A stretch of 64,000 nucleotides of DNA from Ylistrum balloti (taxonomy: Eukaryota): the NCBI RefSeq assembly GCF_031769215.1, contig NW_026781977.1:434001-498000 (forward strand). The letters run 5' to 3'. Under the pieces are notes generated by a model, which was not told the DNA's origin, did not search any database, and saw nothing but the letters and a program-made list of their open reading frames with translations. Position numbers and translations under genes: made by a program. This document shows positions 4,380 through 43,664 of this stretch, piece after piece. How positions within the stretch are numbered: position 1 is the stretch's first letter; every line of letters starts with the position of its first letter.

Positions 4380-5337
4380 TTAGCGAACGAGACCAGAGCC
4401 CAGGCTGTCCAACATCCGTTTTTTTACCTCTTCGTTTTGATCAGATCGTTTGATTAAACCGGAACCCATCCTGTCTAAATAGCGCTTGTTTGCTTCAATA
4501 TCATCGTCATGCAAGCGCTTTATTAAGCCAGATCCCATTCGATCGAGGTAACGTTTGTCCATTTCATTGCTTTCTTTGTCACTGAAACGCTTGATCAGTC
4601 CAGAACCCATCCTATCTAACATTCGCTTTTCTTCTTTTGATTCGTCATCGCTTAGGCGTTTGATCAATCCAGAACCCATCCTATCTAACATTCGTTTTTC
4701 ATCCAATTTATCATCACTCAAACGTTTAACCAAACCTGATCCGATGTTATCTATGAGACGCTTCTCTCCAATGTGACCATCGTCGGCATCATCAGCACGC
4801 TTAAGTAAACCTGATCCCATTCTGTCCAGCATCCTCTTTTCATTTACACTTTCGTCGTTGAAGCGTTTTATCAAACCTGCGCCAAGTCTGTCTATACTTC
4901 GTTTTGGAGCACCGATCACTTTTGTAGATTTTGTAAAGTCTGGTTTTCGTTTTATCAACCCCATTCCTACCCGATCTAAGGGTCGCTTAATGAGTCCCAT
5001 TCCGAGGTGATCCAAGGGACGCTTGATCAGACCCATACCTACTCGATCAAGAAGACGCTTTTTAATCAACCCCATTCCAAGTCTGTCCAACATTCGTTTG
5101 TCCTGGTGTACACCCTGATGGTCGTTTTGTTCCGTCAGGTATTGGTAAACAAGATCTTCTACTGTTGGCCGAAGTCTCTCTATAACACTATCCTCTCGCT
5201 TGACCAGTCCACTTCCGAGTCTGTCCAGTGCGCGCTTTGTGTCAATGTCTTCACCAAAGACACGTTTGATTAGACCACTTCCCAGTCTATCCATACGACG
5301 TTTCCCTGCACTAACATCTTCGTCTATGTCTTGGAAA
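4380..5337 (-). CDS. Neuropeptide precursor, coding exon 2: 14 KR-flanked xxDxxG(S/M/A)GL(I/V/L) peptides (pedal peptide/orcokinin-like; resembles molluscan LASGLV-type precursors)
   Basis: The 304-aa ORF 4380..5294 extends upstream without a stop (T-FQDIDEDVSAGKRR-MDRLGSGLIKR...) to a pyrimidine-rich acceptor (ttttcctctttttatcttcag|, AG at 5339-5338). Repeated 10-aa units are flanked by dibasic KR sites and separated by acidic spacers. Stop TAA at 4380-4382. Confidence 0.95.
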
Positions 5338-5614
5338 CTGAAGATAAAAAGAGGAAAATCTTATTTTTACATTTGAATAGATTTGATTTAGATGGTTTAT
5401 GGTGCACTTTGACCTCTATAAATCTCTTAGCCATTTACAAAGTCTCGTCTTAAACAGTTGAAAAGCAAATTTGTATCAAATTTTTGTACCATGAAAAGCT
5501 TAAAAGACAAGGGAAAATCCGACCTTTCAACCTAAGGCAAGTCTCGTATTTAACAACTTAATAATCCCCCTCAATTTGAGAACCGTTATTTCATCCGAAA
5601 AGGAGTGAAGGATT

Positions 5615-6170
5615 CTATTTATCTCACACGTGGCAGGGACGGGATAACACTCTCTCACATGGAATAAGGACAGGATAATTCTATCTCACACGGGGCAGGG
5701 ACGGAATAACTCTGTCTCACACGGGACAGGGAAGGGATAATTCTATCTCACACGGGGCAGGGAAGGGAAAACTCTATCTCACACGGGGCAGGGAAGGGAT
5801 AATTCTATCTCACACGGGGCAGGGACAATATAACTCTATCTCACACGGGACAGGGATGGGAAAACTCTATCTCACACGGGGCAGGGACAATATAACTCTA
5901 TCTCACACGGGACAGGGATGGGAAAACTCTATCTCACACGGGGCAGGGACAATATAACTCTATCTCACACGGGACAGGGATGGGAAAACTCTATCTCACA
6001 CGGGGCAGGGACAATATAACTCTATCTCACACGAGACAGGGATGGGAAAACTCTATCTCACACGGGGCAGGGACAATATAAATCTATCTCACACGAGACA
6101 GGGATGGGAAAACTCTATCTCACTCAGGGCATTCAAATGGAATGGATAACTCCATCTCACACGATGCAGG
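5615..6170. repeat. 31-bp minisatellite, ~17-18 units, 62-bp dimer in the right half
   Basis: actctatctcacacggggcagggacaatata alternates with actctatctcacacgggacagggatgggaaa. Confidence 0.95.
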
Positions 6171-40744: not shown

Positions 40745-40835
40745 ACATATGAACTCGAGGAATCATCAAAAGGTACAAGGAGAATAAACCCAGGTAATCC
40801 TGAAGAGTCTGCGTCATCTGCTTTCTTATTATTTT
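40745..40835 (-). mobile_element. PLE 3'-tail copy (degenerate)
   Basis: gtacaaggagaataaacccaggtaatcctgaagagtctgcgtcatctgcttt. Confidence 0.5.
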
Positions 40836-43599
40836 CATTAAACAGCTATTGTCCTTGAATGACATTGATCCGACAGATATGACTTATTTGATCGCGGCTT
40901 AATTAAACCTGAACTTTTCAAAACAACGAGATATATTACAATTGGAACGTTTATTAAGTTTTGAGAGAAAGTTTCAAACAGCCAAACAGAAAAGGCTTTA
41001 TAAATGTTATCTCATCATAGTTTTAACACTCGATTTCTCTGGATTAACAACGTTACTGGCGAACCTGTTACATGCACCCGTGTTAATTACCTTTTATCCT
41101 GAGTTACTCGTTTGTTTCTCAACATAACAATTGATATTCATAATTAAACTGTAATCGGCCAGATTGATTGTCTCACTGATGACTTAATGGATTTTCACAC
41201 ACACAACATAAAAATTTCACATCTCCTTTAAAGCTTTATGATCTTAGTAGTCACATCTTAGCTGACAGAGAAACACAGTTATGCTGTCCTGGATTCAGTC
41301 GCTACTCATTTAATTACAGACTTGTGTTGAAAAATACACCTTTGAGATTGTAAGTAGTAGACAATGCTGGTGGACTACAGCCCCTAGATTACTGAAGTGT
41401 GCATGTCATGATATAGTTCATCTATGTTCTTTTGAAACAACCAAACTTTGAAAATAATTAATTTTATTTGATATTTGCGTTTGTCAAGCTCATCATCTAG
41501 TTATTAGCAATGTAAGCATTTGACATTGCTGAAAAGTCACAGAAGGAGGCAACAATTCAATATTGAAAATTATTATTTTTATTTAATATTTGGATTAGCC
41601 AAGCTCATCTGGTTTTTAGGATTTTTCTTAAACAGTCAAGAATATCATACAATATTGAATATACTATATTTACTGTTTGATACTAGATTTTGTTAACCCT
41701 AAGTTAAGGGTGTAAAGTGACACTAGTGAGGGTGGTAGAAGGCGTGGAATATGCCGTAATGAAACCTATCGACGTTAACTCGCTGTACACAACACTTTTA
41801 TTGTATATCTAAAATTGAAATAATTGACGATAAGAACAGTTCCGGGTCATCTTGGTGTTTTGAACAGTCTTGTTTCGACGTATAGGTCAAGTCGATAAGA
41901 ATAATCTCTTAGTAATATACTGCACTGATTACATCCAAATATAAATACTACAAGATATCACACAGCTGTCAAATAAGGTTGTAGCGGCTTAAAGGGCTAA
42001 CGCTAAACGAGCCACGCCCACTTACGGGACCGATTGTTACAAGGTTTCGCAAAGATAAACGAAAATATAACCTAAAGCTGTATGGATTGAAATGAGATCT
42101 GTTCTGGTAGAAAAGATCAATATATCAACACGAGAGAACAAACATGGTTATGTTTGATGAGGTACAAGATGAGTATAACATCGCCATACGTTTGTCGTCC
42201 ACTTAATAAATATCACAATCTCACAAACCAGGTTACAGAGAAGGAAACCGACTGACATTCCAACGATCAGCGAACACAGCAACTATCACATCGCATACGG
42301 AAGTATCATGTTTCTAAATGTTATTTAGCTATTATCAACATGCATCTGTCCAATTCTGTGATATAAGTTTTTTATCGTCAGCTGTTGATATATATGATAA
42401 GGATCGTGATATCAGGCGCGAATTATAGAATATCGCATCAATTTCCACATAACAGGTGAGGTGTGGTAGGAAAATCATGACAGAGAATTGATAAAGTTGC
42501 GTTTTAACTACCAGGTTAACCAGCACAGTGTTAATTGTAAGGATGATATATATAGAATATAACACGAAGAGGTGTTCACTTGCTGCATACCTCAATCGTA
42601 AATAAATGAAAACTTTTGCAAATTGATTTAAGAACCGTGAATCGACTAAGAATTACTTGAAAATAAGATTTCGTTCATCGTTACCGTGACTAGAGGGAAC
42701 CTGTTAATGCCATCTAAAGGATGCCAAGAGTATTGGAGAAAGCATGAAATCACGGCCATAGTCAGTATATTTCCCCTACTTACTCGAATTTTCATGTTTC
42801 TCAGAAACAGTATATTATACAGAGATAATCCTTATAAAGGGACTGATGCTAATGTATGATATCGGTGATAATGTAATAAATCTAAGACTTTTGTAAACAT
42901 TTCAGCTAGCAAACAAGTCTCTGTTATATAAGAGAAACACATAATACAATAACATAATACACAGAGGAAAACTTTGCCGGAATTTTTTGCACACTCATAA
43001 AACTTTAGCTTCCTGAATAAATGCACTCCAATGTTCTTAAAGGCTCGCAAAATGTTTTTACAAACGCTGAAGATTTAGAGTTATCATCCGAGAAAATTGT
43101 TATCGTCAAAGCTGAGTCTAAAGGGAAACGTTTTGTACAGGCTGCAGGGAGCTTCATACTCACATAAATACGTGTTTTTTGGCAAAATGCAATCGTGTGA
43201 AATGCTGGATTATTGTGCTACATTGTTGTATTCAATGAATTGTAGACTAGAACCAGACAGGCGTCAGTAATGTCTAACACGGTAAAACACCTTGACTAGA
43301 TGAAGACTTCTTTAACATTCCTATGCAACTAGGAACTATGTTCTTAAACACCGAGGCCAAGACGACTATTCAGAAAGTGTTCACTATTGGGAATTATGTA
43401 ATGGGGAAAAAACAGAAATATGTCTATAAGGTTTTTAAATATCGCTGATAATCTCCATAGGGACCAACTGCGCTAAATAAATGATGTTAACGTGAGAAAT
43501 TACCAGACTAAAGTTACCAAAGACAGCAATGATGAAGAGAAACTGGTATACAAGTTAATGAGTTTTGTCTTAGAGGTAGATAATGTAGTTTTCACTTAC

Positions 43600-43664
43600 C
43601 TGTGTTGACCCCATGCCAAAGGTACTGCAGCTAACACCACAACGAAGCTAGCTAGTTGTGTCAT
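43600..43664 (-). CDS. Neuropeptide precursor, coding exon 1 (signal peptide MTQLASFVVVLAAVPLAWG-QH)
   Basis: ATG at 43664, then 21 codons plus AG, followed by a perfect gtaagt donor (43599-43594). Hydrophobic core with an A-W-G cleavage motif. The phase-2 donor matches the phase-2 acceptor at 5338 (AG+T = Ser). TATA/Inr elements lie just upstream. Confidence 0.85.

Follow-up and report, generated by a model that had tools for sequence, protein, structure and literature searches.

A predicted signal-peptide exon some 38 kb upstream of the peptide exon in an FCAP 2-type neuropeptide gene of Ylistrum balloti

INTRODUCTION

The name FCAP, which derives from the feeding circuit of Aplysia, is carried by a neuropeptide precursor of the Yesso scallop, Patinopecten (Mizuhopecten) yessoensis. 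Here we describe what is very probably the orthologous gene of Ylistrum balloti, found in a 64,000-nt stretch of contig NW_026781977.1 (assembly GCF_031769215.1, positions 434,001 to 498,000 of the forward strand). This whole stretch is referred to as the window, and coordinates are those of the window unless a contig is named. The gene is read on the minus strand, and its signal peptide appears to be encoded by a tiny exon about 38 kb from the exon that carries the peptides.

The closest described system is Py-FCAP 2, a precursor reported in the ganglion neuropeptidome of the Yesso scallop by Zhang et al. 2018 (PMC5996578). In that study, precursors were obtained by de novo Trinity assembly of ganglion RNA and signal peptides were called with SignalP 4.1, which assigned Py-FCAP 2 a signal peptide of 19 residues (PMC5996578). 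Table S1 of the study lists FCAP 2 as GenBank MH045218, gene PY_T19928, and XP_021361870 "feeding circuit activating peptides-like" (PMC5996578). The complementary DNA (cDNA) given in Supplementary Figure S1 starts MTQLSNLLVVLAAVPLAWGQH-S-FNDIDD...KRMDRLGSGLIKR, where FNDIDD... leads up to KR-MDRLGSGLI, and the peptides MDRLGSGLI, LLDRVGMGLI and MLDRMGSGLI were confirmed by mass spectrometry in the Yesso scallop (PMC5996578).

RESULTS

Two minus-strand exons form one predicted precursor gene

An earlier note on this DNA had proposed that a large peptide-coding exon lacks a signal peptide, and that a 65-nt exon about 38 kb away supplies it in matching phase, the two forming a single gene. Inspection of the minus strand bears this out. 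The large exon, exon 2 (4380–5337), comprises the third base of a Ser codon, an acidic spacer, 14 peptide copies and the TAA stop codon (4382–4380). It is open, as the note had read it, back to an AG acceptor, ttttatcttcag|T at 5337, which is preceded by a good pyrimidine tract and followed by one leftover base and 318 codons. The earliest in-frame ATG of exon 2, at 5294, sits directly on the first peptide, so that exon 2 by itself encodes no signal peptide. The coding part of exon 1 (43600–43664, 65 nt) starts with an ATG at 43664. Its 21 codons translate as MTQLASFVVVLAAVPLAWGQH, a 19-residue signal peptide followed by Q-H, and it closes with the AG of a Ser codon. The splice donor is gtaagt (43594–43599, minus strand), scoring 8.7 bits with our generic matrix. 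Between the two exons lies a phase 2 intron (5338–43599, minus strand) without recognisable coding sequence, spanning 38,262 nt as assembled, a length that is an estimate only because an assembly gap lies inside it.

The joined model was examined by phase arithmetic and by exon-by-exon comparison. The junction codon AG|T encodes Ser, and the joined coding length is 65 + 955 nt = 1020 nt, or 340 codons. The predicted sequence across the junction is ...CAACACAG|TTTCCAAGAC.

Comparison with the Yesso scallop precursor carries the case that the two exons belong together. The Py-FCAP 2 cDNA links a homologue of exon 1, the junction Ser and a homologue of exon 2 with zero extra residues. No coding exon should therefore be missing from the model, whether intermediate or hidden by the gap. 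The exon 1 product is identical to the start of the Py-FCAP 2 cDNA at 17 of 21 residues. The cleavage context PLAWG|QH is the same in both, so that the FCAP2-type N-terminus, a 19-residue signal peptide ending ...PLAWG and then QH, was found here by sequence comparison (core score 2.93). When the first 28 residues of Py-FCAP 2 were compared with the whole 648.5-Mb genome, a single match was returned, at G000:C120:477599-477664(-), which corresponds to 43599–43664 of the window (E 2.7e-4).

Beyond the N-terminus, the two precursors were read side by side by eye and proved collinear in spacers and peptide order along their whole length. The first peptide, MDRLGSGLI, is identical, a spacer ...DSVIERLRPTVE... 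is common to both, the GMGLI and GSGLI/V peptides follow in the same order, and both precursors finish ...GSGLVR-stop. LLDRVGMGLI and MLDRMGSGLI are likewise identical, so that three of the 14 peptides encoded here match peptides confirmed by mass spectrometry in the other species. The differences are those of another species: the signal peptide carries four substitutions, the spacers have diverged, 13 peptide copies are reported there as against 14 here, and the N-terminal spacer ends ...DVGRD-KR there but has a Gly before KRR here.

We put at about 0.93 the probability that this minus-strand gene of two coding exons encodes a secreted neuropeptide precursor of 340 codons orthologous to Patinopecten (Mizuhopecten) yessoensis FCAP 2. 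From the sequence comparison, we infer that exon 1 is joined to exon 2, and that the gene is expressed, in this species.

Two points weigh against this assignment. The first is that no RNA run was found for this species: a single sequencing run, X1, was found to hold exon 2, and X1 must be DNA because its 1196-nt contig spans 4507–5600 unbroken at 5337, passing the acceptor into the intron. X1 was rejected as RNA evidence and is silent on splicing. Since the only such run is DNA, splicing and expression in this species rest on orthology. The second point is that the exons stand on opposite sides of an assembly gap, and their physical continuity across it rests on the scaffold join.

Over ~2 kb, 14 sites differ between the X1 sequence and the window: 12 are non-coding (3562–5428), and the others are 5193 and 5246. 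By our reading of the frame, the C>T change at 5193 is synonymous (Glu) and the T>G change at 5246 replaces Ile with Leu in the first spacer. These differences probably represent allelic variation.

Transcript ends and possible upstream exons

A TATA-like box, TATATTAA, occurs at 43728–43735 on the minus strand, 64–71 nt 5′ of the ATG, and is a likely core promoter element. The earlier note had paired this box with an initiator (Inr). The box was confirmed; for the Inr, only an approximate match, CCAGTA near 43710–43705, was seen. At the other end of the gene, AATAAA at 4103–4108 (minus strand), ~272 nt past the stop codon, is a likely polyadenylation signal. The transcription start and polyadenylation site are thus both predicted positions.

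With the start unmapped and the Inr match approximate, there could be further non-coding or alternative first exons upstream, and 43664–43600 would then lie outside the first transcribed exon. We consider this unlikely. The TATA-like box stands close to the ATG, the FCAP1 paralogue described below is arranged similarly, and the published Py-FCAP 2 open reading frame (ORF) begins at the same Met.

Intron content and the assembly gap

The gap, 134 N at 18923–19056, is the only N run in the window. It is separated from exon 2 by 13.6 kb and from exon 1 by 24.5 kb, and since it falls within the intron, the reading frame is unaffected. Genome-wide, each of its flanks is essentially single copy. No duplicated or redundant contig ends were found around 18923–19056, and an artefact of that kind was dismissed. 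One flank terminates in a CT dinucleotide run, a typical assembly break point.

The gene model could be right and its arrangement still be partly an artefact, if the join at the gap were wrong in distance or concealed an untranslated or alternative exon. The length of the gap is only estimated, the continuity of the join is presumed, and the CT run at one flank would fit such a break. However, the gap is flanked by two exons of one gene in the correct order and orientation, and a misjoin would be unlikely to produce this by chance in 648 Mb. The single-copy flanks also speak against it, as does the orthologous cDNA, which has no unaccounted residues and hence leaves no coding exon missing. We judge this explanation to be quite improbable.

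The remainder of the intron was also searched for coding sequence. A motif scan found no FCAP-like motif outside the large exon, and tblastn with all nine homologues of exon 2 (see below) gave no match outside it. The ORFs of at least 75 amino acids (aa) inside the intron look non-coding, and no convincing dibasic-rich frame was seen between the exons. The intron may nevertheless contain small alternative or untranslated exons.

Tandem repeats occur in the intron. A minisatellite at 5620–6131, 283 nt 5′ of the exon 2 acceptor, consists of 31/62-nt units in 16.5/8.3 copies with 79–93% matches. At 17065–17214, there are three tandem 50-nt units, two of them identical and one 80% alike.

Exon 1 stands out among candidate signal-peptide exons

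Every ATG-started open stretch ending at GT was scanned, scoring the hydrophobic core by Kyte-Doolittle over 9 residues and the donor in bits. On the minus strand, 457 candidates of the right phase were found 5′ of the acceptor. The stretch at 43664–43600 was the sole one to combine a strong hydrophobic core (2.93) with a strong donor (8.7 bits). Extending the scan to all three phases on both strands of the 64 kb (128 kb) produced one further comparable candidate only, 47533–47856, which is on the + strand in phase 0, a different phase, and was rejected. The runner-up among the right-phase candidates, 24253–24183, was also rejected, because its donor is weak (3.2 bits) and it lacks a cleavage site. 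Neither exon 1 nor its promoter region has a second copy in the 648.5-Mb genome.

That 43664–43600 is a chance ORF, or part of another gene, with the true signal-peptide exon elsewhere, deserves almost no credence: a 38-kb search space does yield many ATG..GT candidates, and the sole run holding exon 2 is DNA, but a chance stretch would not be expected to share 17 of 21 residues, the cleavage context and the junction residue with the orthologous cDNA, to be the one place in the whole genome that the Py-FCAP 2 N-terminus matches, to have no other coding exon between it and exon 2, and to be followed by a next candidate with so poor a donor.

Peptide array and family placement

The 14 peptides of exon 2 follow the pattern x(L/I)D(R)xGxGL(I/V/L), lie between KR/KKR/KRR sites, and none carries a Gly for amidation. 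The array thus has the FCAP2-type organisation of tandem x(L/I)DRxG(S/M/A)GL(I/V) peptides between dibasic sites, without amidation Gly. In Pfam, no family matches exon 2; the sole match, PF11061, was sub-threshold and was discarded as a chance one.

A word search for relatives of exon 2 found nine, including the Platynereis dumerilii "pedal peptide neuropeptide 2 MLD peptide" (UniRef V5TCS9, P0006; E 1.2e-16, 38% identity). This significant similarity, together with the repeated non-amidated peptides, is what would be expected of the PP2/MLD type of the pedal peptide/orcokinin superfamily. In the Platynereis precursor, too, a signal peptide precedes tandem MLDxxGSxL(L/I) peptides that are non-amidated and flanked by dibasic sites. 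It is from an annelid, however, its core is GSSLL as against GSGLI here, and its C-terminus is extended by a long non-repeat tail. Oyster precursors P0001, P0002 and P0005 (Magallana gigas A0A8W8IY16) share with the present gene a signal peptide and short spacer that lead to KR and the first peptide, then a spacer with ...YYL.Q.. and peptides of the GMG and GSG types, at 36–44% identity. Their peptides have GFI/GFL endings where those here have GLI, and they are far more diverged overall.

Aplysia FCAP and the FCAP1 paralogue have in common with this gene an N-terminal xLDxLGG motif and a multi-copy precursor with KR sites. Their peptides, however, are 13-mers ending HGY/HGF/HGW, a tail absent here. 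FCAP sensu stricto, of the Aplysia type, is characterised by 12–13-mers with an aromatic HG(W/Y/F) tail, whereas the present peptides end GLI/GLV/GLL. Judged by sequence, the peptides fall in the pedal peptide/orcokinin/FCAP group, with the pedal peptide 2/MLD type as the nearest.

Elsewhere in the genome, a weak paralogous match was noted at G000:C361:335480-336142, the large exon of a LASGLVamide-type precursor (…SLASGLIGKR / …IANGLIGKR repeats).

The FCAP1 paralogue also has a remote signal-peptide exon

The FCAP1 paralogue of the same genome offers a comparison for the proposed arrangement. Its signal-peptide exon is at C526:163710-163835 and ends ...TTACAG|gtgagt, with TATAAATA ~100 nt 5′ of its ATG. 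Its large exon begins at C526:211559, after ...ctccag, and encodes 13-mers ending HGY/HGF. The intron between them is 47,723 nt long and of phase 0, placing the signal-peptide exon that far 5′ of the peptide exon. Since the signal-peptide exon is remote in FCAP1 as well, long first introns are usual here for genes of this small family. Homology between the two introns is not obvious: that of FCAP1 is of phase 0 and lies 21 residues past the predicted cleavage site, while that of the present FCAP2 gene is of phase 2 and lies 2 residues past.

Annotation records

A look-up by the 304-aa product that would start at the internal Met of exon 2 found no record, though records of this genome are possibly outside the resource searched. 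The earlier note had warned that automated annotation could start the gene at an internal Met and so overlook its secretion, and truncation of this kind does occur among the relatives: P0003 of Pomacea canaliculata and P0004 from ENA begin within the peptide array and lack a signal peptide. Both gene models are probably truncated, a remote first exon having been missed.

DISCUSSION

Processing of the precursor would be expected to follow the usual secretory course. The signal peptide would take the precursor into the endoplasmic reticulum and be cut off after Gly19, prohormone convertases would cleave at the KR/KKR/KRR sites, and carboxypeptidase would trim the basic residues. This would release 14 non-amidated peptides of 9–10 residues, such as MDRLGSGLI, LLDRVGMGLI and MLDRMGSGLI. 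To our knowledge, no receptor has been identified for these peptides, and we know of no established function. By analogy with Aplysia FCAP in the feeding circuit, they may be neuromodulatory. In the related Yesso scallop, the precursor is reported to be expressed in ganglia, and the same peptides were detected there by mass spectrometry (PMC5996578).

The N-terminal spacer that follows the signal peptide, QHSFQDIDEDVSAG-KRR (5305–5337 with 43600–43607), ends in Gly and could give a peptide with pyroglutamate (pGlu) at one end and an amide at the other. The amidation signal is not conserved, because the Yesso scallop orthologue ends ...DVGRD-KR without Gly. It would be surprising if the locus held either a new pGlu-blocked, amidated 13-mer, pQHSFQDIDEDVSA-amide, encoded across the splice junction, or small alternative exons in the 38-kb intron. 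For alternative exons, the insect orcokinin A/B splicing is a precedent. If the 13-mer were made, pQHSFQDIDEDVSA-amide would derive from a lineage-specific Gly before KRR, and the Yesso scallop orthologue would be unable to make the same peptide.

The structure proposed in the earlier note, a single gene with its signal-peptide exon 38 kb off, has held up: the Py-FCAP 2 cDNA joins both homologues, and its N-terminus finds only exon 1 genome-wide. The novelty that the note implied has not. The gene is an ordinary orthologue of a precursor already published, and annotated with its signal peptide, in Mizuhopecten yessoensis. Novelty is low, as the precursor, signal peptide and peptides are all published for that related scallop, and nothing new is added to neuropeptide biology.

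The main value is instead practical, for annotation. Both FCAP-type genes of this genome carry the signal peptide on a tiny exon 38–48 kb upstream, and because of such an exon, gene finders working without ganglion RNA can truncate FCAP-type genes. P0003 from Pomacea and P0004 from ENA seem to be examples of such truncation. In the present case, the correct gene model could be recovered from the sequence alone.

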